From positions 157,106-221,105 of the forward strand of contig NZ_JMCB01000022.1 of the NCBI RefSeq assembly GCF_000737315.1: a stretch of 64,000 nucleotides of DNA, read 5' to 3'. This document shows, piece after piece, positions 11,176 to 27,194 of the stretch. Source of the DNA: Hyalangium minutum. GTDB lineage: Bacteria; Myxococcota; Myxococcia; Myxococcales; Myxococcaceae. Within the stretch, counting starts at the first letter, position 1. The number at the start of each line of letters is the position of its first letter. Below the pieces are notes generated by a model, which saw only the letters and a list, made by a program, of their open reading frames with translations, had not been told where the DNA came from and made no database searches. The translations under genes and the position numbers were made by a program.

Positions 11176-13980
11176 TCAGTAGCGGCCCTTCAGCCCCATG
11201 ATGGGCAACACCACGGGTATCCCGATGGGCTTCTTCTCCAGTGACGCGCCAGGGAATCCCCCGCTGATGTAGTCGTAGCCCACCACCTCCTTGCTGATCG
11301 TCACGTTCAGCATGTCGAGGTACGCCTCGAGCGCGAACGTCTCGAAGGCCCACGCCTTCGCCAGCCGCACGTCGAAGCGGAAGAAGGCGGGGAGCCGGCT
11401 GACCTGGTCGCGGTCCACGGGAACCCAGCCAGGCACCTCTCTGCAGTTGTTGGGGCCTTCCGGAATGCACTGGATGCCCTCGCGCTGGGTCTGGCCTCCC
11501 AGCCCCGCCTCGGGACGACCGGTGTTGAAGTGCAGCACTCCGCCCAGCGTGATGTTGTTGGCGAACTTGTAGCTGACGACCAGGTTCAGGATGTGCGTCT
11601 GGTCGAACACGAAGGGCAGGTTCTTCGCGTCTTTACCGATGTCCTCGCCGTAGTCGTTGTAGCGCACGAAGCGCGTATAGCGCGTGCTGCGCTGCAGCGA
11701 GTACGAGAGCCAGCCGAACCAGTTGCCTCCCAGCGGGCGGCGGATCAGCACCTCCATGCCGTAGGCCATGCCGTGGCTGGAAAAATCGGGCAGGTCCGAG
11801 CCTACGTCCCCATCGTCATCGCCATCGCCGAGCGTCTCGTCCGCGAACGGCGTCAGCTCCACCGTGCGCAGCATGGGGTTGATGTAGAAGTCCACCCCGA
11901 CGTCGAAGTTTCTCGGGGCCTTCCACTCCGCGCCCACCGAGAACTGCAGCGCCTCTTGCAGCCCCTGTTCGAGCCCCGCGACGTCCACCACCGGGATGCT
12001 GATGAGCGTGGTGGGTGCCTGGTGGAAGAGCCCCGCGCCAGCCTTCAGCGTCAGGTCCTCGCGCAGCGTGTAGCGCGCGGTGAGCCGCGGCTCGATGGCC
12101 ACGTGGTTGAAGCCCCCGGACAGGTGGTAGTTGTCCAGGCGCAGGCCGGGCACCACGGTCCACCGCTCGGAGGGCTGCCACAGCAGCTCGGCCCACGCCC
12201 CCGTGAAGACACCCACGGCCCGCGGCAGATTGAGGTCCACATCCTCGTCGTCGAGCGGATCCTCCGTGGTGCGGAGCGTGATCTGGGCAAGCCGGCGGTC
12301 CAGGTCCGCTCCCCCGCGCAAGGCCAGCCTCTCGGTGAGCGGCGTCTCGTAGCCCGCGCGCACCGCCAGGGTTCCCTGCTCGATGCGGAACTCGTCGTCG
12401 TCGCTCTGGCTGTTGCTGACCACCGACAGCCGGTCCACGCCCCACGTCACCCCCGTCTCCAACTCGCCACGCCCCAGCGGCCGACGGTCCCGGAGATCCA
12501 CCCGGTGGAAGAGGATGGTCTGCAGCGTGGTGGAGCCGAACGCGTCCTGCGCCCTCGTCCCAAACGTGTCCGAGGAGCCGAACGCGAACAGGCGCAGCTT
12601 GCCGCCGCTCAGGTCCTGCTCCACGCGCGCCTGGTAGTCCCAGAAGTCCAGGACGATCTTGTCGTTCTTCCGTCCCGGCGGCGGCGGCTCCTGGAACGCG
12701 TTGGCCGCCAGCGCGATGATCCACGGCGTATAGGAGTAGCGCCCCGCGATGGAGACGTTGGTGCCCGTGGACTTGAACGGGTACTCGACGAAGACGCCCG
12801 CGTTGATGAGGTCCGCGTAGGCGCTGCCGTGCACCCGGTCCTCCTTCGGGCGGCTCAGCCGGCCGTCGATGGCCCCGCCCATCAGCCGCCCGTACTTGGG
12901 CGGCGGCGTGCCCGGGTAGAAGTCGATCGTGTCGATGAAGTCCGGGTGGAGCACCGCCGGCCCCAGGAAGAGATGGAAGAGGATGGGCACGCGGATGCCA
13001 TCCAGGTAGTAGCCCGTGGAGGACGGCTGGCTGCCGCGCACCACTGGGTACGCCACCCCGGACACCATGCTGCCCACCCCAGGCAGCAGCATCACCACGC
13101 GGAACGGATCGCCCATGGTGCCAGGCACCTCGCGCAGCTCCGCCTCGTGCAGCGTGACGCGCGACACCTCCGTGCGCTCGCGGTCTCCGCGCACCACCGT
13201 CTCGTACGGGTTGATGACCAGCGGCTCCAGCCCGTACACCACCTCGAGCGTCTCGCTGGGGCGGAGGTTCTCGATGAAGGTGCTCGGCTTGTGCCCCGGC
13301 GAAGTCACCCGCACCCGCTGCGCGGATGAGGGCCACCGGGCCTCGAAGCGCCCCTCCGCGTCCGTCTCCACCGGCATGTCCGGCGCGGCGTCCGACAGCA
13401 GCACCGCTCCCGGCAAGGGCCGGCGGTTGCCCTTCTCCCGCACCAAGCCCTTCAGCGTCACGGGACGGGGCGCTGGCGCCGTGCCTCCATCGGTGCTCTC
13501 GGCGACCTCGGACGGCGCCTCGAAGCGGTACTCGAAGCCAATCCGCACGGGCACCGGCTGGCCATCCAGTGTGGCCGGGTTGAAGCGCAGGCCCGTGGCG
13601 GCGTGCAGCGCGGCGTCATCCAGCAGCGGGTGCACCCCCGCCACCAGCGTGGCGCTCTCCACCTCGCCCGCCTCGTCCACCAAGAGTTCCAGGCGCACCG
13701 AGCCCGTCACCCGCTCCGCGACAAGCTGCGGCGGATAGGTGGCCGGTGAGTCCGCCCGCAGCGTGGGCGCCAGGAAGACTGGCTGCGCCACCCCCGCATC
13801 CTCCGCGCCCCCCGTCTCCACGGCAAAGCCAGCGTCCGTCCGGGAGACACCCACCTCCGTGGGCACGCCCGCATCCGGGGTCCCCGCGTCGGCTGGCCCC
13901 TTCCGGGCGCCCCACGCCGGCAGCGCCACCAGTGCCAGGCCCAGCGCCAGCCCTACCTGCCAGGCTCCCCTCTTCGCCAT
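11176..13980 (-). CDS. TonB-dependent receptor with N-terminal TonB C-terminal-like domain
   Basis: Signal peptide from MAKRG; TonB_C-like YPPQLVAERVTGSVRLELLVDEAG...FNPA; carboxypeptidase-regulatory-like segment; plug GDPFRVVMLLPGV; beta-barrel ending in an aromatic residue (GLKGRY). Confidence 0.88.
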   Translation of the reverse strand: MAKRGAWQVGLALGLALVALPAWGARKGPADAGTPDAGVPTEVGVSRTDAGFAVETGGAEDAGVAQPVFLAPTLRADSPATYPPQLVAERVTGSVRLELLVDEAGEVESATLVAGVHPLLDDAALHAATGLRFNPATLDGQPVPVRIGFEYRFEAPSEVAESTDGGTAPAPRPVTLKGLVREKGNRRPLPGAVLLSDAAPDMPVETDAEGRFEARWPSSAQRVRVTSPGHKPSTFIENLRPSETLEVVYGLEPLVINPYETVVRGDRERTEVSRVTLHEAELREVPGTMGDPFRVVMLLPGVGSMVSGVAYPVVRGSQPSSTGYYLDGIRVPILFHLFLGPAVLHPDFIDTIDFYPGTPPPKYGRLMGGAIDGRLSRPKEDRVHGSAYADLINAGVFVEYPFKSTGTNVSIAGRYSYTPWIIALAANAFQEPPPPGRKNDKIVLDFWDYQARVEQDLSGGKLRLFAFGSSDTFGTRAQDAFGSTTLQTILFHRVDLRDRRPLGRGELETGVTWGVDRLSVVSNSQSDDDEFRIEQGTLAVRAGYETPLTERLALRGGADLDRRLAQITLRTTEDPLDDEDVDLNLPRAVGVFTGAWAELLWQPSERWTVVPGLRLDNYHLSGGFNHVAIEPRLTARYTLREDLTLKAGAGLFHQAPTTLISIPVVDVAGLEQGLQEALQFSVGAEWKAPRNFDVGVDFYINPMLRTVELTPFADETLGDGDDDGDVGSDLPDFSSHGMAYGMEVLIRRPLGGNWFGWLSYSLQRSTRYTRFVRYNDYGEDIGKDAKNLPFVFDQTHILNLVVSYKFANNITLGGVLHFNTGRPEAGLGGQTQREGIQCIPEGPNNCREVPGWVPVDRDQVSRLPAFFRFDVRLAKAWAFETFALEAYLDMLNVTISKEVVGYDYISGGFPGASLEKKPIGIPVVLPIMGLKGRY

Positions 13981-14106
13981 GTGCCCCCGCGGCTCGCGCA
14001 TGGGCGGCATGACGCCAGGGTTTCCAAGGCGATGACAAGCCCAGACAGCACCAGAAGACGCACCCGGAGGGCGCGTCCCCAGCAACACGCCGGGTCACGA
14101 GGCGCC

Positions 14107-14472
14107 TCAGTGATCGATGATGGCGGCCGCCACCAGGTTCATCAGCTTGATCTGGGGGCGCTGCAACCGACGCAGGCTGCGCACCAGCCGCCGCATGTCC
14201 GGCGTGTTGTCCAGTTCGGACGGGACATCCTCGGCGTAGGCGGACTCGGCGTGGCGAGGGGCAATGCCCATCAGCTCGTCCGGGTTGGCCCGCAGGGCCA
14301 GAGACATCCTCAGCAGCGTCGGCACGCTGGGCAGCATCTTCCCTCGCTCCATGCGCCCATACACCTCCGGGGCCACCCCGATGCGGGCGGCGACGTCCGA
14401 CTGCGTCAGCCCCGCGCGCATCCGCGCCAGCCGCGCCGCCTCGCCGACCGTCGACGCCAACTTCTTTTCCAT
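14107..14472 (-). CDS. XRE-family helix-turn-helix regulator
   Basis: ARMRAGLTQSDVAARIGVAPEVYGRMERGKMLPSVPTLLRMSLAL; probable start MEKK at 14472 (ORF extends to 14595). Confidence 0.88.
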   Translation of the reverse strand: MEKKLASTVGEAARLARMRAGLTQSDVAARIGVAPEVYGRMERGKMLPSVPTLLRMSLALRANPDELMGIAPRHAESAYAEDVPSELDNTPDMRRLVRSLRRLQRPQIKLMNLVAAAIIDH

Positions 14473-14670
14473 CCGCCGCACTGCGGGGGGCACCGCAGAC
14501 ACTTTGTTCTTGTTGCGGCGGGCGCGTCTGCGCTCCGCCAGCGACGAACCCGTGGAACCTTTCAGGTTGGATCTCACCACACGAACCTTGCGCATGTGAC
14601 AGGCTGGACGGGAGTCACCCCACGGCGCGCTCCGCCAGCGACGGCTGTATAACCCGCCACGTCGGGAGCA

Positions 14671-14709
14671 CCTATCCCTATTTGCCAGGTCCTACCCTAT
14701 TCGGCAGGT
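14671..14709. repeat. Imperfect tandem direct repeat in the XRE/kinase divergent promoter region
   Basis: CCTATCCCTATTTGCCAGGT (14671-14690) followed by CCTACCCTATTCGGCAGGT (14691-14709). Confidence 0.6.
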
Positions 14710-14918
14710 TGGGTTGTTCGCTCCTGTGCAGCCCTAAGCCCTGGATTTTCCGATTAGACCGGCCGCCCCTGCCCTCTCATGTAGGTCCCGCCCTGGCAGG
14801 TAGGGCGACCCCCAAGCGGGCGGAGGCCCTGGGAGGTGGTGCGACCCGACCCAGGAGGTGACGGCGGCGAGAGGAGGAACCATACTCTCCAGGTCCTCCC
14901 TGCCGCAGGAGTGCCGAC

Positions 14919-16073
14919 ATGCCGTCCATGTCCCTGAAGCCGACCGGACCCGAGGTGCTACTGAGGTCCGGACGCACCTCTTATGAGTTCGTCCGTTGGC
15001 TGGGGTGGGCCCACCATGGGGAGCTGGTGCTGGCCTGCCGCCGGTTCGACGAGGCCTTCAGCGGCTTCAGCGTCATCAAGCGCCCCGTGGCTCCCGTGTC
15101 CGAAGAGGCGCGGCGGCGGCTGCTGGACGAGGGCCGGGTGGCCTCGCAGCTTCACCACCCCAACATCCTCGCGGCGCTGCAGCTCAAGGGGCCGGAGGAT
15201 GTGCCCCACCTGGTGATGGAGCACGTGACGGGGATGCGGCTGAGCGCACTGTTGGAGGCGGCTCAGCGGGCGCAGCAGCCGCTCTCGGAGGCCTCCACCT
15301 GCCACGTGGTGGCCGAGGTGGCGGACGCGCTGCACCACGCGCACTCGCTGGTGGACGAGCACGGCCGTGCGCTGGGCATCGTCCACCGCGACGTGTCCCC
15401 CCACAACATCCTGCTGGGCGAGCATGGCGAGGTGAAGCTGCTGGACTTCGGCGCGGCCTGGTCCCGGCTGTCCGGGCGCGTGAGCAGCGAGGGCCCCACC
15501 GTGCAGGGCAGCCTCGCGTATGCCGCCCCGGAGCATGCCCAGCACCTGGCGCTGGACGCGCGGGCGGACCAGTTCTCCCTGGGCATCATCCTCCTGCAGC
15601 TGCTCACCGGCCGGCACCTCTTCGAGGGCGCCGAGCGCTTCGACGCCCGCCTGCGCCGCGCCCGGGCTCCGGAGAGCGACGCCACGCGGAAGTGTGCTCA
15701 GGACCTGGCCCAGCGCATCCGCAGCTACTCCCAAGAGGATTTGGAGGCCGCCACGCGCGCCGTCCCCGAGGCCCTGCGCTCCACCGTCCTGCGGGCCCTG
15801 GCGCCGGAGCGCGCGGCGCGGTTCGCCTCGTGCGGCCACCTCGCCAAGGCGCTGCGGGAGTACCTTCGGGACACCGGGCAGTATGTGGGCCGGCACGAGG
15901 TGCTCACGGAGCTGGTGGCGCTGAGGTATGTGTCCCTGCGTGTCGAGGCGGGGGAGACGCCCGACGACGCGGTGCGCGAGCGCTCCCTGCCGGATCCAGG
16001 CCTCCGCTCGGCGCCCCGGCTCCTGGCCCATCTCCGAGCCGCGCGCTTCCGGGGCCCCCCCCGCCGCCGCTGA
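14919..16073 (+). CDS. Hanks-type Ser/Thr protein kinase, cytoplasmic
   Basis: VIKR, HPNI, HRDVSPHNILL, DFG, YAAPE, DQFSLG motifs; no TM segment. Confidence 0.93.
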   Translation: MPSMSLKPTGPEVLLRSGRTSYEFVRWLGWAHHGELVLACRRFDEAFSGFSVIKRPVAPVSEEARRRLLDEGRVASQLHHPNILAALQLKGPEDVPHLVMEHVTGMRLSALLEAAQRAQQPLSEASTCHVVAEVADALHHAHSLVDEHGRALGIVHRDVSPHNILLGEHGEVKLLDFGAAWSRLSGRVSSEGPTVQGSLAYAAPEHAQHLALDARADQFSLGIILLQLLTGRHLFEGAERFDARLRRARAPESDATRKCAQDLAQRIRSYSQEDLEAATRAVPEALRSTVLRALAPERAARFASCGHLAKALREYLRDTGQYVGRHEVLTELVALRYVSLRVEAGETPDDAVRERSLPDPGLRSAPRLLAHLRAARFRGPPRRR

Positions 16074-16180
16074 TCATCGACCAGTCAACACCACGCTGAG
16101 CAGGGAACTTCACTCGGGCCCGCCTTCGTACGAGTCTCCTGGGGGAACTCGTATTGCCTTGTCCAGGGGGTCGGTCTGCA

Positions 16181-16591
16181 ATGGCGGCGCACTTCCGTAT
16201 CCTCGTCGTGGAGGATCACAACGACAGCCGGGAGATGCTGGAGGAGTTCCTCACGGAAGAGGGCTTCACGGTCGAGACGGCGGTCAACGGGCTGCAGGCG
16301 CTGGAGCGGCTGCGGCTCGCGCCCCGGCCCGACTTGGTGCTGTTGGATTTGATGATGCCGGTGATGACGGGCTGGGACTTGATGGCGCGGGTGGCCGAGG
16401 AGCCCACGTTGTGGGGCCTGCCGGTCATCGTTGTGTCGGGCGCGGGCTCCACGCGGCCCGTCCCGCACAACGTGCTCACCTCCATCCCCAAGCCGTTGGA
16501 TCTCCACCTGCTGATGGACACCATCTCGCGCCTGCAAGACCTGCAAGACGCGCCTGCTCCCGCCTTGGCCGTGGCTGCCGCGGGCCGCTAG
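16181..16591 (+). CDS. Single-domain response regulator
   Basis: ILVVEDH, LLDLMMP, IPKP. Confidence 0.92.
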   Translation: MAAHFRILVVEDHNDSREMLEEFLTEEGFTVETAVNGLQALERLRLAPRPDLVLLDLMMPVMTGWDLMARVAEEPTLWGLPVIVVSGAGSTRPVPHNVLTSIPKPLDLHLLMDTISRLQDLQDAPAPALAVAAAGR

Positions 16592-16600
16592 CCCCGGACG

Positions 16601-19051
16601 CTACGCCGCGGGAGCGGACTGGGAGCCCGCCGCCATCCGAGGCAGCACCACGCGGAAGGTGGTCCCCTCCTCGGCGGTGGAGGACACCTCGATGTGGCCG
16701 CCGTGGCCCTTCACCACCTGCTCGACGATGTAGAGCCCCAACCCCAGCCCTCCGCCCTCGGAGGAGGCGCGGCGGAACGGATCGAACAGGTGGGGCATCG
16801 CCTCGGGGGGGATGGGGTTGCCCCCGTTGTGCACCTCGAGCACCACGCGCTCCCCGCTGTCCACGAGGTTGAAGAGCACGGGCACCTCGGACGGGCTGTA
16901 TTGGAGCGCGTTGCCGCCCAGGTTGCTCACCACCTGTGCCAGCCGGTCCGCGTCCCAGGCCCCGTCGTAGCGCCCCGGCCCCACCCGCAGGTTCAGGGTG
17001 CGCTCGGGCCAGGCCGCCTCCAGCTCCTCCACGCCCTGCCGCAGCACCGAGCGAATATCCGCCGGCGCGGGGTGGATGGGGATGCCGCCGCCCAGCCGCA
17101 GGCGGGTGAAGTCCAGCAGCTCGCCAATCATCCGCTTCATCCGGTCCACGGACTTGGCGATGCGGGCCGCGGCGCGCTGATCCCTCGCGGGGAGCGTCTC
17201 ACTGTGCAGCAGCTGGGTGACGGAGAGGTGGATGGCGTTGAGCGGGTTGCGCAGATCGTGGCTGACGATGCCGATGAGCTTCCCTCCGAACTCGGCGGCC
17301 TGGCGCGCGGCGGCCTCGGCGCGGCGCAGCGCCGTCACGTCCACGAACGCCACCACCGCCGAGGTGATATGCCCCGCCCGGTCCCGGATGGGCGCGCTGG
17401 AGTTCAAGAGGATGATGCGCTGGCCATCGGGGCGGCGGATCTCCACCTCCTCGCCCTGCACCACCTCACCGGTGAGCAGGGAGCGCGCCAGGGGCCATTC
17501 GTCCGGCTGGTAGGGCTGGCCGTCCGGGTGGAAGCCCGGGTACTCGGAGTACTCCCCCACGTGCTCGGCCTGGATGAAGGGGAGGCCGATGATGGCCTCC
17601 ACCTGCCGGTTGCCCATCACCATCCGTCCATGGGGCGCCTCGGCGAGGATGACGCCTGCCGGGAGCTGATCCAGCACCGCCGCCAGCCGCGAGCGCTCGG
17701 ACTCGATGTCCGCCAGCAGCCGCTGGCGCTCGGCCTCCGCGTTGCGGCGGTGGGTGATGTCCAGGAAGGTGGCCGCGCGCTGAACACCCTTGCCGGTCTC
17801 GTCGCGCAGGGTCGTCACGTGCGTGAGGACGGGGATGCGGCTGCCGTCCTTGCGCAGGTGGATGGCCTCGTACTCGTGGTGGGGCTTGGACTGGGCGGCA
17901 GCCACGTGCCGGACCAGCACGCCTCGCGACTCGGGGGCGACCATGTCCGCCAGCGGCCGGCCGATCAGCTCCTCGCGCGCGTAGCCGTGCATCCGCGCGA
18001 AGGCCGGGTTCACGTCCTCCAGCACGTTCGCCTCGGCGCTCGTGAGCGCCACGCCCACGCCCAGGTGGCTGAAGATCTCCTCCCACTGCTTGCGTTGCGC
18101 CTCGCTGGCGCGCAGCTGGCCCAGGGACTGCTCGACCTGCTCGCGGGCCTGCTGCGCGCTGACATGGGCCCGCGCCCGGGCAATCAGGGACGTGGCGCGC
18201 GCCGCCATGGTGCGGAACAGCAGCAGGTCCTCATCCGAGAACTCGTGGCTGGAGCGGCTGCCCATGTGCGCCACGCCGATCAGCTCCTCATCGAGGAGCA
18301 ACGGCACGACATAGGCGGCACGCAGGCCGCTCTGGCGGAGCAGCTCGCTGCGCACGCGGGGATCCTTGGCGGTGTCGCGCACGAGCACGGGCTGGCGCGT
18401 GGCGGCCACCTCGCCAGCGATCCCCTCGCCCACGCGCATGCGGAAGCCCTCCTCCAACGAGACCCCCACCGCGCTCTCCACCCGAAGTGTGTCCCCCTCC
18501 CGCAGCATGACCGCCACCGTGTCCACCACGGGTACGGTCTCCTGGAGCACCTGGAGCAGCCGGGGCAGCAGCGAGGGCAGGTCCGGGCTGCCAATGGCCG
18601 CGGCAGAGACGCGATCCAGCGCCTGGAAGGTGCGCTCTCGCGCGCGCATGTAGCGGCTGACGGCGGCACCAACGGCCTCGTCCACAGCCTCGTGGAAAAG
18701 GGTGGCGGCCTCCATCGAGTCCAGAGCACCGCCCTGAGCCTGGGCCCCCCACAGCCGCAGCACGCACTGGCGCAGCACCTGGTACTCCTTCACCACCTGC
18801 CGCAGATCGAACCCCTCGCTCTGGCGCTCCAGGGAGTGCATGTCCGGGACGAGACCCAGCGCGGCGCCGACCTCCCCGGTGCGCCCCTCTGCTACCAGGG
18901 AGGCGATGCTCTCCAGCAGCTGGGGCAGGTGGTCACGCAGCGCGAGCTGCGACAGGCGCTGGGCGGCGGGCAGCCGGCGCACCTCGGCCTCCCACTCTTG
19001 GAGAATGGTGTCGCCGTGGGTCCGGAGGAAGTTTGCCAGGGGTGAGTGCAC
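16601..19051 (-). CDS. RsbRD_N-like / GAF / PAS / PAS sensor histidine kinase
   Basis: N-terminal helical RsbRD_N-like region (ILQEWE...GFDLRQVVKEY), GAF, two PAS, SHDLRNPL, NLGGNALQY, GLGLGLY. Confidence 0.92.
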   Translation of the reverse strand: MHSPLANFLRTHGDTILQEWEAEVRRLPAAQRLSQLALRDHLPQLLESIASLVAEGRTGEVGAALGLVPDMHSLERQSEGFDLRQVVKEYQVLRQCVLRLWGAQAQGGALDSMEAATLFHEAVDEAVGAAVSRYMRARERTFQALDRVSAAAIGSPDLPSLLPRLLQVLQETVPVVDTVAVMLREGDTLRVESAVGVSLEEGFRMRVGEGIAGEVAATRQPVLVRDTAKDPRVRSELLRQSGLRAAYVVPLLLDEELIGVAHMGSRSSHEFSDEDLLLFRTMAARATSLIARARAHVSAQQAREQVEQSLGQLRASEAQRKQWEEIFSHLGVGVALTSAEANVLEDVNPAFARMHGYAREELIGRPLADMVAPESRGVLVRHVAAAQSKPHHEYEAIHLRKDGSRIPVLTHVTTLRDETGKGVQRAATFLDITHRRNAEAERQRLLADIESERSRLAAVLDQLPAGVILAEAPHGRMVMGNRQVEAIIGLPFIQAEHVGEYSEYPGFHPDGQPYQPDEWPLARSLLTGEVVQGEEVEIRRPDGQRIILLNSSAPIRDRAGHITSAVVAFVDVTALRRAEAAARQAAEFGGKLIGIVSHDLRNPLNAIHLSVTQLLHSETLPARDQRAAARIAKSVDRMKRMIGELLDFTRLRLGGGIPIHPAPADIRSVLRQGVEELEAAWPERTLNLRVGPGRYDGAWDADRLAQVVSNLGGNALQYSPSEVPVLFNLVDSGERVVLEVHNGGNPIPPEAMPHLFDPFRRASSEGGGLGLGLYIVEQVVKGHGGHIEVSSTAEEGTTFRVVLPRMAAGSQSAPAA

Positions 19052-19057
19052 GCGGGT

Positions 19058-19330
19058 TCAGGAGGGCGTTACGGGAAGTATCTCGTCCGGCCCGCGGAGC
19101 TCGAGAAGGTGGAGCAGTCCGTGGGTCCAGTCCACGGAGTACAAAACATGGAAGCCAGAAGGCAACTGACACTGTCGGGCTCCCTCTGCTTCGGCTGGAG
19201 AATCTTGCGGGCCGAGCAGCGGGCCCGAGAAAATTCCGCCCAGCTCATGCAGGACGCACTCGCGCACGGCCGCTGGGCATGCGGAGAGCACCCGCACAGC
19301 CTGGGGCGTGAGCTGGAGTCGGAAGGCCAT
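19058..19330 (-). CDS. Small RelE/ParE-fold-like protein (90 aa)
   Basis: MAFRLQLTPQAVRVLSACPAAVRECVLHEL...SGFHVLYSVDW..LLHLL parallels the RelE pattern; ends 6 nt before the histidine kinase GTG; AGGA shortly upstream. Confidence 0.6.
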   Translation of the reverse strand: MAFRLQLTPQAVRVLSACPAAVRECVLHELGGIFSGPLLGPQDSPAEAEGARQCQLPSGFHVLYSVDWTHGLLHLLELRGPDEILPVTPS

Positions 19331-19557
19331 CGGTCCTGTCCAAAATGAGCATGGCCCCAGGATCGATCAAGCGGCCCAGCGCCCTCTGAACACGAACGTC
19401 GAAGATCGAGCGGTGACCGGGCACCCGGGTGGGGCACGGAGCACCACCGCTGTAATAAACCGGACGATCGCCTCTGTACCCCTGGGGGCCCAGGCCCGCT
19501 GGATTGCTCAACTTGGACAGAGCCTGTACAGAGACTCTCCGTCCAGGGAGAGTCCGC

Positions 19558-20232
19558 ATGGCTGTCGAGCAGCTGCTCGTCGTAGAGGATGATCCGGCTT
19601 GGCGGGTGTCTCTGAGAGAGACGGCCCGCGCGGAAGGCTGCCTCGTGGAGGTGGCCCGGGACGGTGAGGAAGCGCTCTCGTACCTGAGCGACCGCGCGTG
19701 CCCCCGGCCCAACCTCGTGGTGATGGACCTCATGATGCCGCGGGTGGATGGATGGGAGCTCTATGGGCGGATGCGCGCCGATGAGGAGCTGCGCCACATC
19801 CCCGTGCTGATGATGTCGGTGGCGAACCAGCAGGTGAATCTGGGCGGCGTGGTGGGCTTCCTGCGCAAGACCGTGCCGCAGGACGTGATGCTCGGGGAGC
19901 TGCGCGAGCGCCTGCGCCGCTTCGATGTCCTGCCGCCCCCGGTCGGGACTTCGCAGCCCTACGCCTTGCGGTTCACCGAGGAGTCCGCGCTCGCGCTGGA
20001 CACGCTGCCCGGGCCCCTGCGCCAGTTGCTGCGCCAGCGCCTGTACCGCGCCGCGGAGCTGGCCGGGGGCGAGCTGCCACTGATGTCCACGTGGCTGATG
20101 GCGCTGCCCGGCACCCCGCCCTCGCTGCTGGTGACGTCGGAGGGTGTCCGCGTGGTGCTGGAGGTGGATGACGGAGCGCGCCAGCTCATCGCCTCCGTGG
20201 TCATCATCCCGCCGCACCTGCCGCGCTCCTGA
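19558..20232 (+). CDS. Response regulator with C-terminal RelE/ParE-like output domain
   Basis: Intact receiver (VVEDD, VMDLMMP, RKT); C-terminal YALRFTEESALALDTLPGPLRQLLRQRL...GVRVVLEVDD; GGAG RBS before ATG 19558. Confidence 0.8.
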   Translation: MAVEQLLVVEDDPAWRVSLRETARAEGCLVEVARDGEEALSYLSDRACPRPNLVVMDLMMPRVDGWELYGRMRADEELRHIPVLMMSVANQQVNLGGVVGFLRKTVPQDVMLGELRERLRRFDVLPPPVGTSQPYALRFTEESALALDTLPGPLRQLLRQRLYRAAELAGGELPLMSTWLMALPGTPPSLLVTSEGVRVVLEVDDGARQLIASVVIIPPHLPRS

Positions 20233-20253: not shown

Positions 20254-23094
20254 TCATTGGATGGGCACGCGCCGCGCGGTGCCCTCACTCAAGTCCACCC
20301 GGAGCAGGCGGCCCGCACTGTCGAAGAGGAGCAGCTCGCTCCCCGAGAAGCGGGCCCGCACACGCGCCTCTCCCTCGAAGAGGAAGCGCGCCCGGGACGA
20401 ACCGGCCTTGCCGGTGAGCTTCACCTCGTGGCCCTCGGCGGCGCTCTCGATGAACAGCGTCCACGGCGGCGAGAACATCAGACCGTCCACCCTCACCACT
20501 TGGCCCGTAGCCGCGTCCAGGTTCACCATCGGCAGGCCGTCTCCCGGCCGGCGCGAGGCACGTGAGCGCAGCGTGGGTCCTCCGGGGAGCGCGTAGGTCC
20601 ACATCTGCGGATCGTCTCCCCAGGTGGCGAAGCGGAGTGACTCCGCGTCCGCCTCGAGCGCCACCACCGCGCCGCCCACTTGGGACACGCGCCAGAGCGC
20701 GCGCAGGCCGTCGGCGGCCAGCGCATCCACCGCCAGCACCGTGTCGGCCTCGGCCAGGAACCACAGGCTGCCGTCGTAGCTGGGGGCAAAGGCATCCACC
20801 TTCGCGTCGCACCAGTGCGTGGCGCGCCGGGGGCCGGGCTCGATGCGGGAGATGCGCTGGAGCTCTCCCCGAGGCGCCAGCGCCAACACCCGGTCCTCGT
20901 GCACCGAGGGTACCAGCGAGAAGGCGGGCACGTCGAAGTGCGCCGCGCAGCTGCCATCCGCGCGCACCAGCCGCACCCCCGCCTCGCCCAGCGCCAGCAG
21001 CACGCGCTGGCTCGACAGCGCCACCGCGTCATGGATGGGATAGGGACCGGCCTCGGTGGCGGAGATCCGCGCCTGCAACAGGGGCGCGTCGTGCTCGTCG
21101 GCCCAGCCGCGGCGCCGGGGATCCGCGATGGCCGGCAGGTCCGCTCGCAGCGTGCCGTCTCCCACGTCCCTCAGCAGGCGCGTGAGGAAGGCCGAGTCGA
21201 TGCGCGTGTGGTTCGCGGCCCGGTCCCTCAGCAGCGCGCGCACCGAGGGCCCCACCAGCGCCGCGCGAGGCTCCGAGCGCGGCTCGGAGGCGAGCACCTC
21301 CGAGAAGGCGAAGCGCTCCGCGGCGCGCTCCTGGCGCTCGTCCTCCAGCAGCTCCAGCGCCTGGGGCCGTGCCGCGTCGAAGGAGGCCGGGAAGGCCGAG
21401 ATGAGCCGGGCCAGGGCTCGCGCTCCGCCCACGCCTCCCACCGTGACGCCCTGCTCCAGCCAGGCGCGCGCCAGGGGACGGGCGTCCTCCAGCGGCCAGA
21501 CCACCACCGTGGCGCGCAGGTAGTCCCCAGCCTCGGCCAGCGTCTCCGCCCAGAGCAGGCGCAGCGTGCGCGCCTCGGCGGGGTGCGTGCGCTCCAGCCG
21601 CAGCACCGCGTCCGGGAAGGCCCCGCTGCGCCGGGCGATGGCCACCGCGCGCCGGAGATCCTTCGCGAGCAGCCACTGGCGCACCACCAGACCGGGTGGC
21701 AGTCCCCGCCCCTCCGCGAGCTCGGCCGCGAGCTTCAGGCGCCCGTGCTTCTCCAGGAAGGACACGGCCTCCTCGTGCGCGCCCAGCAGCTCGGTGAGGA
21801 CGAAGGCGGCCTCGTCGATGCGGCCCTCGCGCTCCAACTTCTTGAAGGCCGCGCGGTAGCGCTCCTTGAGCGCCGCGTAGATCTGCTGGCCCCCGCCGAA
21901 GACGGACGCGCCTCCGCCGCGCTGGGGTTGGATGGCGAGGCTCTCGCGCGGCCCCGGAAGTCCCAAGGCGATGCGCGCCGACTCCGACAACTTCTCATTC
22001 CCGAGCGGGATGGCGTAGCGCAGCGCCTCCTCAAGGTTACCCTGCTCGAACATGTCGAAGAGGCGCTGGACGTACTCCGCCTTGCGCTGCCCCAGCATCG
22101 GGCCCAGGGGGGTGTTCCGCAGCAGCCACTCGGAGAGGCGCGAGAAGAGCCCCGGGCCTCGTGGTGGGGGAGGCGTGGCGGGAGCTCCCGGCGACGAGCG
22201 GCCCCTGCTCGCCTCTCTCAGCCGCCCGAGCATGCGCGACAGCCACGAGGGCTTCACCTCTTGCTGGGCCTCACGGGCCTGGGCGGCCGAGCCCTTCCCC
22301 GAGGGCAGTGCGGGCCTGGCCGTGGCACCGGCTCCTCCGGAGCCCAGCGTGCGCTGGAGCCAGGACGCGAGCCGACGCAGGGCTGAGGGAGCGGTGCCAT
22401 CGGCGGAGGCCTTTCCGGCGCGGGCACTGGCGGTCTTCTGGGCCTCGGTGATGGGAGTGCCCTTCTCGCCTCGCAGCCACGCACTCAGCCGGTCCCACAG
22501 GGAGGCGCGCGCACCCATCGCCTTCGCGGCCTGAAGCCCCTGAGGCACCTCACGGCCTTCCATGCGCGCCCGCATGGCCTCGGCCTCGGGATCCGGAGGA
22601 GGAACACCTTGGAAGAGGCTGCGCGTGGGCTTCTCGACGGACTCCAGCACCTGCACGGGAGGCGGAGGCGCTCCGAGCCCCTTCACGGGAACAGGGGTCC
22701 AGCCGGAGACATCGAGCCACGCGGCCACGTCGATTCGCCGGGAGGGCTCCGCCGGGAACACCTCCGCGTGGCCCGCGAGCACCAGCACGAGCGAGCCAGG
22801 AGGCGGAGCCAAGCGCTCACGCTCCACGGCCGAGAGTGGCGCGGACAGCAGCACGCCATGCTCCAGCGTGAGGGGCAGCCCGGGAGCGGTCTCACAGTCC
22901 ACCGGCCGGGGCCGGGGCAGCCGCAGGAGGAAGCCGCCCGCCAGCGCGAAGACGGTGGTGCCCGGCGTCCACGCGGCGAGCACGCGGCTTCGGACGCCGC
23001 GCTCCCCGAGCAGCGAGGGAGCAAACCAAAAGGCGGCCGCCACCACGTGGCCGCGGTGGAGGTGCAGCCGGGGCCTGAGGGGAGACGCGCTCAC
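20254..23094 (-). CDS. bpX6-like domain protein of a MoxR-vWA-beta-propeller ternary system
   Basis: N-terminal RPRLHLHRGHVVAAAFWF recalled as bpX6-like, central alpha-solenoid, C-terminal propeller-like repeats; GTG overlaps the upstream stop (GTGA). Confidence 0.7.
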   Translation of the reverse strand: MSASPLRPRLHLHRGHVVAAAFWFAPSLLGERGVRSRVLAAWTPGTTVFALAGGFLLRLPRPRPVDCETAPGLPLTLEHGVLLSAPLSAVERERLAPPPGSLVLVLAGHAEVFPAEPSRRIDVAAWLDVSGWTPVPVKGLGAPPPPVQVLESVEKPTRSLFQGVPPPDPEAEAMRARMEGREVPQGLQAAKAMGARASLWDRLSAWLRGEKGTPITEAQKTASARAGKASADGTAPSALRRLASWLQRTLGSGGAGATARPALPSGKGSAAQAREAQQEVKPSWLSRMLGRLREASRGRSSPGAPATPPPPRGPGLFSRLSEWLLRNTPLGPMLGQRKAEYVQRLFDMFEQGNLEEALRYAIPLGNEKLSESARIALGLPGPRESLAIQPQRGGGASVFGGGQQIYAALKERYRAAFKKLEREGRIDEAAFVLTELLGAHEEAVSFLEKHGRLKLAAELAEGRGLPPGLVVRQWLLAKDLRRAVAIARRSGAFPDAVLRLERTHPAEARTLRLLWAETLAEAGDYLRATVVVWPLEDARPLARAWLEQGVTVGGVGGARALARLISAFPASFDAARPQALELLEDERQERAAERFAFSEVLASEPRSEPRAALVGPSVRALLRDRAANHTRIDSAFLTRLLRDVGDGTLRADLPAIADPRRRGWADEHDAPLLQARISATEAGPYPIHDAVALSSQRVLLALGEAGVRLVRADGSCAAHFDVPAFSLVPSVHEDRVLALAPRGELQRISRIEPGPRRATHWCDAKVDAFAPSYDGSLWFLAEADTVLAVDALAADGLRALWRVSQVGGAVVALEADAESLRFATWGDDPQMWTYALPGGPTLRSRASRRPGDGLPMVNLDAATGQVVRVDGLMFSPPWTLFIESAAEGHEVKLTGKAGSSRARFLFEGEARVRARFSGSELLLFDSAGRLLRVDLSEGTARRVPIQ

Positions 23095-24887
23095 GAGCCC
23101 ACCTCGGGTGCTGCGCGGTAGAGGGCCATGCCCTGAGTGAGGCTCCACACCAGGAGCTCTCCTTTCACCGTGAGCCACGTGAGCACGGGCAGGCCATGGC
23201 TCACGGCGGAGTGCACCACGTCATCCGAGGCACGCGCCACCACCTGGCTCTCACTGATGCCCACCAGAGAGAAGGTGCGCCGATCTTGCCCGAGCAACAC
23301 CAGCGCCGGAGCCCGGCTCTCCGTGTTGAAGGTGGCCACTCCCACCACGCGCGAGCCCACGGGTACATAGATTGGAAGGTTGCCCTTCGCGAGCAGCACC
23401 TGCCAGGTGCCAGGCTTGTGGCGCAGCGCGAGCAACCCAGCCTCGGGGTGGCCCCCCATGGCCGCATGATGGCCGAGGAACGCGTCACCATCTCCTGGCC
23501 CGAGCGGCAGGTGGCGCTGTTGGTGGTCCTCCAGGATCCCCAGCCACACGCCATCCATCGAGGAGCCCGGCTGAGGCGTCATCACGAAGACCGGCTTGCG
23601 ATTCACCTCGGCAAGGGCACTGGTCTGGCTGGACAGCAGCGCCGGGCCTTGCTGGCTGACGATGAAGAGGCGGCCCTCGCTGTCGCGCACCACGATGCGC
23701 TCGCGGCCGCCCTCGACAATCGAGGTGGCGAGCCCCGGAGCATGATTCGCCGGAGGAGCGTCCGGCAGCAGCCCCTCGTAGCCCAGATAGGGGATGCCGC
23801 GAGGCCGGTAGCCACCGGGTGCGCTCTTCACGCCACCGTGGACCCACAGGACCTTGTCGTCGCGGGTGAGCACGAGCAGCCCGCCATTGCGGCGCCAGCC
23901 AGCGGCCACCAGCCGGTGCCCATCGGGAGGCTGGAAGCGCCGGGGCTTGGGCGTGGTGGCGCGCGCCGAGTGCGGAATGGGTTGTGCGGCCACGCCCCCA
24001 TCCTGGCGGATGAAGATGAGCCGCGTGCCATCCGCGGAGAAGAAGAACGACCGGAAGCGGCCCGCGCTGCTCAGCCGCACCGGCTTCGGAGCACGCGTGC
24101 TGAACGGATCCCGAAGCAGCCGCACGCAGTCGTCCGCGGGAGGCAGCTCCAGCTCCACGGAGGTGGGAGCGCGGGCGATGCGCCGCACGGCGACCGAGAG
24201 CCGGCGGACGCTCGGGGCCACCACCTCTTCCACCTCGATGCGGGACAGCTTCGAGGCCTCGCTCAGACGGCCGAGGCGCGAGCTCCCCACGAGCCACGCG
24301 TCCTCCGGCGCCGAGCCCAGCTCCAGCGCCTCGCGCCACCGGGCCACGTGGGCATCCGTAACGGGGGCTGCGGTGCGGGCGGCGAGCCAGGTCTGGATGC
24401 TGGCGGGAGTCACAGCGTTGAAGGGCACGCGCCCGGACGAGTCCTGGAGCACGCACCAGGCGAACTCGGCACCGGCGGCCTCGGCGCGGCGCTGCAGCAC
24501 GACGAGCGTCGCGAGGTGGGCGATGCGAGGGGAGCCCAGCTGATCCGGCCCCGCGTCCAGCAGCGCCACGGTGCGCCGGGAGCCCTGAGGCTGCTTGAAG
24601 GCGGGCTTGAGGAAGGCGTGCTCGCCGAAGGCCGCGCGGCGGATGAACTCGTCGGGAGACTCCAGGGCGTAGAGCCACTCGGTGAGCAGGAGCCGCTCGT
24701 AGGGGCCACGGCGGGTGAGCCCGTCATAGCCCTGGGGCTCGCCGCCCTCCGTCTCACCGCGAGGCCGGAGCGCGCCGATTGCCGCCGCGAGCCGCGCCAC
24801 ATAGGGCCCCAGGCTGAGCGCGAGCTCCTCCGGGAAGAGAGAGAGCTGCAACGCCCACGGACGCAGCGGGGCAGGCAGTTGGCTCAC
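23091..24887 (-). CDS. Divergent vWA-like plus beta-propeller component of the ternary system
   Basis: GEPQGYDGLTRRGPYERLLLTEW and VALLDAGPDQLGSPRIAHLA (degenerate MIDAS-like); beta-rich C-terminus; GTG start overlaps the upstream stop. Confidence 0.7.
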   Translation of the reverse strand: MSQLPAPLRPWALQLSLFPEELALSLGPYVARLAAAIGALRPRGETEGGEPQGYDGLTRRGPYERLLLTEWLYALESPDEFIRRAAFGEHAFLKPAFKQPQGSRRTVALLDAGPDQLGSPRIAHLATLVVLQRRAEAAGAEFAWCVLQDSSGRVPFNAVTPASIQTWLAARTAAPVTDAHVARWREALELGSAPEDAWLVGSSRLGRLSEASKLSRIEVEEVVAPSVRRLSVAVRRIARAPTSVELELPPADDCVRLLRDPFSTRAPKPVRLSSAGRFRSFFFSADGTRLIFIRQDGGVAAQPIPHSARATTPKPRRFQPPDGHRLVAAGWRRNGGLLVLTRDDKVLWVHGGVKSAPGGYRPRGIPYLGYEGLLPDAPPANHAPGLATSIVEGGRERIVVRDSEGRLFIVSQQGPALLSSQTSALAEVNRKPVFVMTPQPGSSMDGVWLGILEDHQQRHLPLGPGDGDAFLGHHAAMGGHPEAGLLALRHKPGTWQVLLAKGNLPIYVPVGSRVVGVATFNTESRAPALVLLGQDRRTFSLVGISESQVVARASDDVVHSAVSHGLPVLTWLTVKGELLVWSLTQGMALYRAAPEVGS

Positions 24888-25339
24888 GGCGAGCCCTCCT
24901 CGGTCTTCAGCCACGAGGCCAGCGTCACACGGGCCACGGGCCGCGCGGCCCCCAGGGGGATGAGGAGCCCCGGGCGCGGGAGCACGGCGAGCGGTGTCCC
25001 CGAGGCGGCGTGAGCCACGAGCGCCCGCTCGAGCAGCGCAGGTGCCACATCGGAGGCGAGCGCGCACGGCAGCAGCAGCGAGGGCGCAGCGGCATCCTTC
25101 CCCAGGTACACGGCGCCATCCACCCAGGGCAGGGAGTCCGTCTGTCCCAGCAACACCAGCACGCCTGGGCCCGCCACCCCACTCCACGCGCCGAGCTGCT
25201 TCTCCTCGGCGGCCAGAGCCCTCCGCGCGAGCGCGAGCGCCACCGGCCCCACACCCGCGACAGCGAGTGCAGTCAACGGCTCGGACCGGGGACTCCACGT
25301 CACCGGCAGCCGCGCAGGAGCTGGAGTCAGCCCGCCCAT
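24884..25339 (-). CDS. bpX5-like domain protein
   Basis: LPVTWSPRSEPL...LPWVDGAVYLGKD..APSLLLP recalled as bpX5-like; translationally coupled on both sides. Confidence 0.65.
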   Translation of the reverse strand: MGGLTPAPARLPVTWSPRSEPLTALAVAGVGPVALALARRALAAEEKQLGAWSGVAGPGVLVLLGQTDSLPWVDGAVYLGKDAAAPSLLLPCALASDVAPALLERALVAHAASGTPLAVLPRPGLLIPLGAARPVARVTLASWLKTEEGSP

Positions 25340-26502
25340 CACGCCTGCGCCACGGCCTGGGCCGGGCCTTCAATGGCCGCGCGAATCTCCTCTCGCAGCA
25401 CCTGGAGATCCGGCGGCAGCGCCTCGGGAGCAAAGCCCGCGTCCATCTCGCGCACCACGCCCTCGAGCTTGAGCCGCCACGCCGCGTAGTCCTCTGCGGC
25501 GCCGCTCACGGGCACCTGGTTCATCACCTCGCGCCCGGCCCGAGCAATGCGCTGGGCTCGCGCCAGAGGGCCCGCGCTCGCCTCCAGCGCCGCCGCCGCG
25601 AGCGCCGGGTTCTCCGTGGCGGCCAGCAAGTCGCGCAGCACCTCGCGCGCCAGGGCCTGCCCCTCCTTGGTCGGCACCGCGTAGATGAGCGGCCACAGAT
25701 CCGCCACGCCTGGAGACTGCCGCCCTGCCAGCGCCGCCGCGGCCGCCATGAGCCGCTGCACCTTCACCGCGCGCCGGTCCGACAGCCCGATACCTGCCGC
25801 TCTCAGCATGCGCAGCGCATGCGCCAGGTGCGGGCGCACCGGAGCGAGGTCCGCCTCCTGCGCCACCCGCGCCAGCACATCCAGCGCCTCCAGCGAGGCC
25901 TTCCGTGCCTCTACCTCGCGCCAGAGCGAGGCCCCGCCCGCCAGCAGCTCCTCCAGCTGCGGATCCGGCACGGGCTCCACATAGATGCGCGCCAGGAACC
26001 GGTCCGCGAACGCCGCCAGCGACTCCTCCTCGGGCAGCGCGTTGGAGGCGCCCACACACACCCGCAGGGGCACCTTCATCCGCGTATGTCCCCGCCGGAA
26101 GGTGCGCTCATTGAGCACCCCGAGCAGCGTGTTGAGAATGGCGGTGGAGCCGAGGAACACCTCGTCCAGGAAGGCGACCTCGGCCTCGGGCAGCATGCCG
26201 GTGGTCTCCGTCTCCACGGTGCCCTCGCGCAGCTTGCGCAGATCCACCGGGCCGAAAATCTCGGAGGGCTCGGTGAAGCGGCCAAGCAAGTACTCGAAGT
26301 AGCTGCCCCCCAGGGCCCGCGCGGTGCGGCGGACGGCCTCGCTCTTGGCGGTACCGGGCGGGCCGATGACGAGCAGGTGCTCACCGGCCACGGCGGACAG
26401 CGCCACCAGCTCCACCATGGCCTCGCGCTCGACCAGGCCCCGGCCCGCGTCGGCGAGGGCATCCCGGAGCGAACCGGCAGCCTCTTCAAAAGTCAGGGAC
26501 AT
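25339..26502 (-). CDS. MoxR/RavA-family AAA+ ATPase
   Basis: Walker A GPPGTAKS, EPSEIFGP, Walker B FLDE, GASN, FADRF. Confidence 0.93.
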   Translation of the reverse strand: MSLTFEEAAGSLRDALADAGRGLVEREAMVELVALSAVAGEHLLVIGPPGTAKSEAVRRTARALGGSYFEYLLGRFTEPSEIFGPVDLRKLREGTVETETTGMLPEAEVAFLDEVFLGSTAILNTLLGVLNERTFRRGHTRMKVPLRVCVGASNALPEEESLAAFADRFLARIYVEPVPDPQLEELLAGGASLWREVEARKASLEALDVLARVAQEADLAPVRPHLAHALRMLRAAGIGLSDRRAVKVQRLMAAAAALAGRQSPGVADLWPLIYAVPTKEGQALAREVLRDLLAATENPALAAAALEASAGPLARAQRIARAGREVMNQVPVSGAAEDYAAWRLKLEGVVREMDAGFAPEALPPDLQVLREEIRAAIEGPAQAVAQA

Positions 26503-26600
26503 GGCGCGCAGTGTACGAGGCCGGACGCCCGATTCCGAACGCTGACTCAGACCGGGGGGGCGGTGGACCGGCCCCCGCCCCTGTGGGCTAGTCTTCCCGG

Positions 26601-27194
26601 GTGATGCGACGTTCAAGAGAGTTCGGGACCTTCATCGCGGTGCTCCTCTGGGCAGCGGTGGCCCAGGCAGGCGAGTGGCGCGGGTACCTCGGGCTGGGCG
26701 CCGGCATGGCGCTGGACCGCTACAGCGAGTGGGACGCCAAGGGCGCCGCCATCAACGTGTACTTCGGGGTCGAGGCTCCCATTGGCCTCTCCGTGGGCGT
26801 CTACGCCGAGGCCGCGGAGACGTGGGGCCAGAAGTTTGAGGACCTACAACAGAGCTCCTCCAGCCGGGTGCAGCTGGACTACCGGCAATACGGCCTGGAG
26901 GTGCGCTTCCGCGGGTTCCGGGAGCGGATGATCTCTCCATGGGTGTCGCTCCGGCTGGCCCGCAGCACCTCCACGCCGCAGACGCCGGACGAGTTCGGCC
27001 AGCTGGTGCGCCAGGAGTTCCAGGCCCTGGGTGGGGCGGTGCGCTTCGGGCTGGACTGGTGGCTGGGGATGAACTGGGGCATCACCGGGGCCACGTCCTG
27101 GCAGTGGTGCGACGTGCGCTACGAGAAGGAGTCCGTGCGCGAGTGCGCCAAGCCCATCAACACCCTCCTCCTGGGGCCCACTGTTCGCTTCTGA
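26601..27194 (+). CDS. Small outer-membrane beta-barrel protein
   Basis: Signal peptide ending AQA, alternating hydrophobic strands, C-terminal Phe (GPTVRF). Confidence 0.7.
   Translation: MMRRSREFGTFIAVLLWAAVAQAGEWRGYLGLGAGMALDRYSEWDAKGAAINVYFGVEAPIGLSVGVYAEAAETWGQKFEDLQQSSSSRVQLDYRQYGLEVRFRGFRERMISPWVSLRLARSTSTPQTPDEFGQLVRQEFQALGGAVRFGLDWWLGMNWGITGATSWQWCDVRYEKESVRECAKPINTLLLGPTVRF

Follow-up and report, generated by a model that had tools for sequence, protein, structure and literature searches.

The gene at positions 19558 to 20232 of a 64,000-nucleotide stretch of the Hyalangium minutum genome (contig NZ_JMCB01000022.1, positions 157,106 to 221,105; this whole stretch is referred to as the window) encodes a response regulator in which a receiver domain is followed by a small output domain predicted to fold like the toxins of the RelE/ParE superfamily. 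An initial annotation, made from the DNA letters and a list of open reading frames (ORFs), had proposed such a fusion, and the computational analysis described here followed it up. The window has a G+C content of about 70%, and its nearest named relatives are Hyalangium and other Myxococcaceae/Archangiaceae. The regulator is arranged divergently from small90, a gene for a second RelE-like protein that the initial annotation overlooked and that alters the picture of the locus. The features of the regulator gene are as follows, with the evidence for each in parentheses.

19558-20232, forward strand: response regulator gene, receiver plus predicted RelE-fold output domain, 224 amino acids plus stop (translation, orthologues and a G+C content at third codon positions, GC3, of 0.91)
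19558-19917, forward strand: receiver (REC) domain, residues 1-120, with phospho-acceptor D57 (PF00072, conserved active-site residues, matches of the full-length model)
19918-19959, forward strand: proline-rich linker, residues 121-134 (lowest conservation, 0.46, and lowest predicted local distance difference test score, pLDDT, with a block mean of 65)
19960-20205, forward strand: output domain of predicted RelE/ParE-superfamily fold, residues 135-216, beta-alpha-alpha-beta4, with a short tail to residue 224 (AlphaFold2, AF2; Foldseek; ratio of nonsynonymous to synonymous substitution rates, dN/dS)
20038-20163, forward strand: stretch of highest conservation in the output domain, residues 161-202, comprising the end of helix 2, a loop, an extra strand and the next two strands

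Translation placed the ATG of the regulator at 19558 and its TGA at 20230-20232, in agreement with the coordinates and reading frame first assigned, and a Shine-Dalgarno-like stretch, GGGAGAG, stands directly 5' of the ATG. An in-frame TTG at 19504, which would add 18 residues, was rejected as the start because the orthologues begin at the M(A/P)V of ATG 19558, a start shared by 66 aligned sequences. The GC3 of 0.91 for the whole gene, and of 0.96 for its C-terminal part, is typical of genuine genes in the window. About 73 full-length orthologues, 49 to 92% identical, were found in Hyalangium, Stigmatella, Pyxidicoccus, Myxococcus and Corallococcus. Judged from its sequence, the gene is real and encodes a genuine phosphorylatable two-component response regulator.

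The only Pfam family found in the protein was PF00072, which matched residues 7-111 with 61.2 bits against a cut-off of 30.2. Across 67 orthologues, D11 and D57 never vary, and conservation reaches at least 90% at D12, S87 and K104; because these five residues are kept, the receiver is an ordinary phosphorylatable one and not a pseudo-receiver, as its description as intact had implied. The AF2 model of the full-length regulator reached a pLDDT of 87.6 and a predicted template modelling score (pTM) of 0.81, a value that hints that the two modelled domains may be packed against each other. A Foldseek search with this model returned receivers only (CheY, Rcp1, DivK and similar), and the output domain was therefore modelled alone. 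No Trans_reg_C, GerE or other helix-turn-helix (HTH) match was found in the regulator with Pfam or NCBIfam, and thus no DNA-binding output of the OmpR or NarL type. The orthologues carry only the database names 'response regulator', 'CheY-like', 'transcription factor' and 'OmpR family', of which the last two are unsupported.

The output domain begins at Y135, nucleotide 19960, where the initial annotation had placed the start of the C-terminal stretch. Sequence searches with it were negative throughout: residues ~126-224 as a single sequence matched nothing in Pfam or NCBIfam even at E values of up to 1-10, none of 34 orthologous output domains scanned singly matched Pfam, neither phmmer nor the 34-sequence profile found anything relevant among PDB sequences, and a PADLOC scan gave no toxin model match. 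The likeness to E. coli RelE that had been noted by eye did not hold up at the sequence level, where hhalign gave an E value of 0.079 and a probability of 0.7%, not above chance; the first strand and two helices in this alignment are nevertheless in the register that had been proposed. Homologues were sought among 5.8 billion proteins with a word index and among 1.84 billion representatives with an exhaustive phmmer run. Both searches returned only receiver-fused orthologues or their fragments, which among the 1.84 billion representatives form two 50%-identity clusters, and neither collection yielded a free-standing or otherwise-fused homologue. Two candidates, P0123 and P0125, were rejected as chance matches of repeats or low-complexity sequence. 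Since the searches returned nothing else, the output domain constitutes a narrow lineage-specific family, encountered in them solely as a receiver fusion.

Structure prediction gave a different picture. Modelled alone, the output domain reached a pLDDT of 89.5 and a pTM of 0.80, with five AF2 models in agreement at 86.6-89.5, and its secondary structure (strands 136-139, 180-183, 189-194, 197-204 and 209-216; helices 141-147 and 152-169) was identical in the domain-only and full-length runs. The best Foldseek match in the PDB was Thermus thermophilus RelE (2khe; E value, 2.6e-4; template modelling (TM) scores, 0.67/0.73). It was followed by M. tuberculosis RelE2 and RelE1 (TM scores of 0.66/0.79 for RelE2, 3g5o_B), E. 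coli RelE in its free, RelB-bound and ribosome-bound forms and, further down, P. horikoshii and M. jannaschii RelE, YoeB, HigB2, PfiT and HP0892. In all, about 34 consecutive top matches were toxins of the RelE superfamily, with TM scores of up to 0.79, and in the viral library BFVD the second-ranked match was a 'cytotoxic translational repressor'. This structural likeness is above chance and supports placing the modelled output domain in the RelE/ParE structural superfamily. The fold call of the initial annotation thereby passed the structural check on residues ~135-224, and the beta-alpha-alpha-beta-beta-beta spacing counted by eye was reproduced by AF2, except that the model closes with four strands, one more than proposed.

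The domain is maintained by purifying selection, with a dN/dS of 0.21-0.50 against three close relatives and a mean column identity of 0.73, compared with 0.70 for the receiver. Its resemblance to an active RelE toxin is poor. Of the five catalytic positions of E. coli RelE, four (K52, K54, R81 and Y87) are without equivalent: the strand matched to K52/K54 by secondary-structure register reads SLLVTS, and only 8 residues follow the last strand of the regulator, too few to hold counterparts of R81 and Y87, which had already been described as not evident. R198 is the sole R61-like arginine and is present in 78% of orthologues. The mean net charge of the output domain in the 67 orthologues is -1.9 (range, -4.8 to +2.2) at a pI of 6.2, compared with +6.5 and 9.7 for RelE; the acidic domain lacks the strongly basic RNA-binding surface of RelE mRNA interferases, and the predicted outward positions of its sheet include the acidic residues E195, E202 and D204. 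His156 and His161, which are common in other genera, are not essential catalytic residues, because the window protein has Gln and Arg there.

Conservation is instead concentrated in residues 161-202, whose consensus is HLxRAAELxGTELPxxSTWLMALPGxPPSLLVTVEGVRVVLE. The invariant positions of the output domain are mostly hydrophobic (L168, P174, S177, W179, L180, A182, L183, P188, L190 and L210) and cluster in this block, including the loop and extra strand that are absent from RelE. The pLDDT of the block is locally lower (71-82) although it is highly conserved, and a combination of high conservation with locally low pLDDT is often met at binding surfaces. Residues 161-202 of the model are therefore a likely candidate for a partner-binding surface.

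The genes and intergenic region upstream of the regulator are the following.

19331-19557, no strand: divergent control region shared by small90 and the regulator, 227 bp (no conserved ORF)
19058-19330, reverse strand: small90, conserved 90-amino-acid RelE-like protein, divergent from the regulator (profile matches, conservation, dN/dS)
16601-19051, reverse strand: histidine kinase, probably the cognate one, RsbRD_N-GAF-PAS-PAS-HisKA-HATPase_c, following small90 in the same orientation (Pfam; syntenic in nearly all loci)
16154-16591, forward strand: single-domain receiver protein (REC145), convergent with the kinase (PF00072, 67.7 bits; syntenic)

The start of small90 lies 227 bp upstream of the regulator on the opposite strand, and 6 nt separate its stop from the beginning of the histidine kinase gene, which itself lies 0.5 kb from the regulator. 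Conservation of the protein is good, with identities of 59% in Stigmatella and 41% in M. fulvus HW-1 and a dN/dS of 0.10-0.22, and its homologues form 118 clusters, all myxobacterial, of which three UniRef clusters are named 'Type II toxin-antitoxin system RelE/ParE family toxin'. Despite this conservation, its GC3 is 0.72, compared with 0.91-0.93 in the neighbouring genes. With a 58-sequence profile of small90, the four best PDB matches were E. coli RelE (E values, 0.0064-0.0095; residues 1-77) and the fifth was P. horikoshii RelE, and hhalign against RelE gave an E value of 4.2e-5 and a probability of 70%. There was no Pfam match, and the RelE-family profile match is therefore weak. Like the output domain, small90 is without K52, K54, R81 and Y87 of RelE; in the HMMER alignment K52/K54 align with Ala/Val and R61 with H/R/Q, and the C terminus is a proline-rich tail. 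No further paralogue of small90 or of the output domain was found in the window.

Read along the DNA, the locus consists of genes for a TonB-dependent receptor and an Xre-type HTH protein (reverse strand), a Ser/Thr kinase and the single-domain receiver (forward), the GAF-PAS kinase and small90 (reverse), the regulator (forward) and, convergent with it, a MoxR system. The single-domain receiver is a likely second phospho-acceptor of the GAF-PAS kinase. Some 30 genomes, from Hyalangium, Stigmatella, Pyxidicoccus, Myxococcus, Corallococcus and Citreicoccus, share this block of four genes, from the single-domain receiver through the kinase and small90 to the regulator. In all loci that extend far enough upstream, small90 and the regulator are arranged divergently. 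This conserved synteny across the Myxococcaceae/Archangiaceae indicates that the regulator is inherited vertically and is neither patchy nor mobile. At the far side of the block, in 11176-16073, the TonB-dependent receptor and Xre-type HTH genes are divergent from the Ser/Thr protein kinase gene, and Stigmatella, Hyalangium, Pyxidicoccus and some Myxococcus have this whole group in synteny with the two-component genes; the HTH protein has weak MqsA-antitoxin and PADLOC HTH/RmrA/CapH-like matches.

Several Myxococcus loci depart from this order. An extra dCache-HAMP histidine kinase lies between the GAF-PAS kinase and small90 in locus L002 (7052-9358), with equivalents in L008, L011-L013, L023 and L032, and where it is inserted the GAF-PAS kinase and small90 do not share a transcript. 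Because this insertion separates the GAF-PAS kinase from small90, the small90/regulator pair is the most stable unit of the locus; in L008 and L023 about 1.5 kb lies between the two. The regulator has also decayed. In Myxococcus sp. CA023 (L032, 7100-8300) it is reduced to an output-domain remnant of about 144 nt and unrelated sequence stands where the receiver would be, while small90 is intact, and in Myxococcus sp. MxC21-1 it is split into fragments of 92 and 68 amino acids (P0133 and P0137; QEG98_39210/39215), the second of which is most of the RelE-fold domain alone. The loss in CA023 and the breakage in MxC21-1 argue against an addictive toxin-antitoxin tie between the regulator and small90. 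The most divergent orthologue, P0122 (L036), has 51% identity in the output domain, and its neighbours are a divergent single-domain receiver gene and, downstream, a gene for a multi-pass membrane protein.

An antitoxin gene co-transcribed with the regulator was not found beside it, where the neighbours are small90 on the opposite strand and the convergent bpX6. The only ORF in the spacer, 19308-19592 on the forward strand, was rejected as an antitoxin since it is not conserved and has a GC3 of 0.61, in line with the earlier remark that no antitoxin-like ORF is adjacent. The spacer also holds the motif ACAGAGnnTGTACAGAG / ACAGAGCCTGTACAGAG at 19517-19533, with two copies of ACAGAG 11 bp apart, 25 nt upstream of the regulator start. 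It is identical in the three closest relatives and absent from more distant loci, and as it is kept only in those three it is uninformative as an operator-like element.

Collectively, these findings are best explained, in our judgement with somewhat better than even confidence, by a phosphorylation-controlled regulator of protein interactions that is built on a degenerate RelE fold and is not an active toxin. The initial annotation had offered two readings, a phosphorylation-gated inhibitor of translation or gyrase and a dead RelE fold reused as an interaction module. The second is favoured because four of the five catalytic positions are gone, the charge is acidic, the conserved insert is hydrophobic, inheritance is vertical and syntenic, and the gene has been lost or broken in two Myxococcus strains. 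The adjacent GAF-PAS histidine kinase would phosphorylate D57 of the regulator, and the resulting change in the receiver would alter the presentation of the RelE-fold domain, with the loop-plus-strand block 161-202 serving as the contact surface. Output would then be exerted by protein-protein binding and not by DNA binding or RNA cleavage, and the best candidates for the partner would be small90 and the kinase module itself.

Several points weigh against this interpretation. The fold rests on a predicted structure, and the alignment behind it was shallow, with 34-67 sequences that are all 49% or more identical; the catalytic positions were mapped by secondary-structure register and not by superposition. 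Active sites vary widely within the RelE superfamily, those of RelE, YoeB, HigB and YafQ being different from one another, and to our knowledge ParE has no defined catalytic residues; for these reasons the apparent lack of the E. coli RelE residues is no proof of inactivity. Small90 and the output domain show no significant similarity to each other in BLASTP or hhalign, although the alignments are in register, and common ancestry of the two is therefore not claimed. Neither small90 nor the MoxR operon is present on the 2.2-kb contig L036 that carries P0122. Finally, the choice of partner is a guess based on the adjacency of the genes.

Among the alternatives, the one that survives best, and which we still consider improbable, is a switch by mimicry like that of PhyR, in which the RelE-like domain and small90 would compete for one partner, for example the kinase, the ribosome or a protein resembling an antitoxin, and phosphorylation would select which of them binds. 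Two RelE-fold proteins are encoded head-to-head and occur together across genera, and the set of genes at the locus parallels the alphaproteobacterial set of PhyR, NepR, kinase and single-domain receiver; PMC4551977 gives a summary of PhyR and NepR. However, the shared partner is hypothetical, the two RelE-like modules lack a detectable sequence relationship, small90 is missing from the short contig of P0122, and in CA023 the regulator was lost while small90 was kept. A broader form of the idea, to which we give the same low credence, is that a toxin fold serves as a currency of two-component signalling: phosphorylation would expose the RelE-like domain, which would compete or pair with small90 for a common target (ribosome, kinase or antitoxin-like protein).

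Slightly less probable again is a toxin gated by phosphorylation, whether an active translation inhibitor (an mRNA interferase or a non-cleaving blocker of the A site) or a ParE-like gyrase poison. The receiver would act as a built-in antitoxin, released or engaged when D57 is phosphorylated, and such inhibition in cis would explain the missing separate antitoxin gene; the pTM of the full-length model suggests that the receiver packs on the output domain. The nearest structural matches are RelE toxins, the arginine equivalent to R61 is present in most orthologues, and the gene lies beside a conflict-type MoxR system. Against this stand the lack of equivalents of K52, K54, R81 and Y87, the acidic domain with its exposed E195, E202 and D204, the hydrophobic nature of the conserved positions, the absence of any match to a toxin model of Pfam, NCBIfam or PADLOC, and a gene that is vertical, single-copy and syntenic and not patchy. 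Some probability is retained for a gated toxin because of the plasticity of active sites in the superfamily and the example of ParE.

A further alternative, about one notch less probable, is that the RelE-like fold is an artefact of prediction, or that the domain is a mere dimerisation module or structural appendage that converged on a small alpha/beta fold without RelE ancestry. This would fit the lack of a significant sequence-profile link to any RelE/ParE family, the modest Foldseek E values (2.6e-4 at best) and the strand that the model has in excess of RelE. It fits poorly with the agreement of the five AF2 models (pLDDT, 86.6-89.5) and of the full-length run in secondary structure, with the ~34 consecutive top PDB matches from one superfamily at TM scores of up to 0.79, and with the RelE-type protein retrieved from an independent viral library.

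Downstream, and convergent with the regulator, lies a MoxR-vWA-beta-propeller ternary ('bp') system at 20254-26616 on the reverse strand, with these genes.

20254-23178, reverse strand: bpX6
about 23091-24890, reverse strand: unassigned protein of ~599 amino acids
24884-25342, reverse strand: bpX5
25339-26616, reverse strand: bpMoxR

A mechanically called ORF of 780 amino acids at 23091-25433 is over-extended, as relatives encode a protein of 597 amino acids and a separate bpX5 of 153. The stop codon of bpX6, at 20254, leaves a gap of 21 nt after the regulator stop, as had been noted, and the two genes are also neighbours throughout Hyalangium, Pyxidicoccus, Myxococcus and Corallococcus loci. 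In Stigmatella the regulator, small90 and kinase are kept and unrelated genes (DUF4215 and others) replace the MoxR operon, which for that reason is regarded as a neighbour and not as part of the system. In a 2020 eLife paper devoted to MoxR conflict systems, receiver domains receive only sporadic mention, as domains linked to effectors. That the regulator is an accessory gating or sensing the MoxR system is the least probable of the alternatives, since the adjacency in four genera and the 21-nt convergent arrangement with bpX6 are offset by the Stigmatella loci that lack the operon, by the membrane protein gene that follows P0122, by a convergent orientation that precludes co-transcription, and by synteny on both flanks of the block, from which the adjacency may be shared ancestry.

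Among known proteins, the RelE-family mRNA interferases (E. coli 4fxe/4v7j, 2khe, M. tuberculosis 9g12/3g5o and P. horikoshii 1wmi) are closest to the output domain in predicted fold and topology, with TM scores of 0.55-0.79, and small90 resembles the family at the level of sequence profiles too. The output domain differs from them in being fused to a receiver, in lacking a RelB-type antitoxin, in being acidic where they are basic, and in its vertical inheritance within one bacterial family. In structure it is without K52/K54 and the C-terminal helix that bears R81/Y87, and its helix 2 is followed, before the sheet, by an additional strand and a conserved loop.

Two characterised response regulators offer parallels. 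RssB consists of a receiver and an inactive PP2C-like domain and acts as the ClpXP adaptor for RpoS, and is thus a response regulator with a catalytically dead enzyme fold as its protein-binding output. It was among the best NCBIfam receiver matches of the regulator, far below its cut-off, but its output fold is unrelated, and there is no evidence of a protease-adaptor role for the window regulator. In PhyR, a receiver is joined to a degenerate sigma-like domain that acts as a decoy, together with NepR, and the alphaproteobacterial locus adds a kinase and a single-domain receiver. The likeness lies in the joining of a receiver to a degenerate version of some other class of protein, and in a locus that also supplies a small protein along with a PAS kinase and a single-domain receiver. 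The fold differs, however, as does the small protein, since small90 resembles the output domain itself and is not known to bind it, and a partner switch at the window locus would be hypothetical.

For a toxin homologue encoded without a cognate antitoxin gene there is a precedent in the same group of bacteria, the solitary MazF of Myxococcus xanthus, which is reported to have a role in development (cited in PMC2701414). Here too a toxin fold is an antitoxin-less chromosomal myxobacterial gene wired into host regulation, although MazF belongs to another toxin superfamily, retains nuclease activity and is not fused to a receiver. Full-text literature searches found no paper describing a receiver-RelE fusion, and none for 'bpMoxR' either, in agreement with the initial annotation, which knew of no characterised fusion of this kind; a 2009 toxin-antitoxin census contains no mention of 'receiver' or 'CheY'. 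The protein therefore appears, in the literature searched, to be a response regulator with an undescribed output domain.

Response regulators are usually regarded as transcription factors or enzymes, and an output of the RelE toxin fold would add a new class. It would also be a clear case of a toxin-antitoxin fold recruited into core signalling and not a selfish module. If the domain were active, it would be the first toxin known to us under direct control by histidine-aspartate phosphotransfer. Myxococcus xanthus, which is amenable to genetics, has a member of the family, and the locus, where the regulator is paired with another RelE-like gene and a kinase of its own, is a compact system for studying the re-use of a fold. 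The mimicry reading, if true, would mean that social myxobacteria possess a signal-gated brake on translation or growth built from toxin-antitoxin parts.

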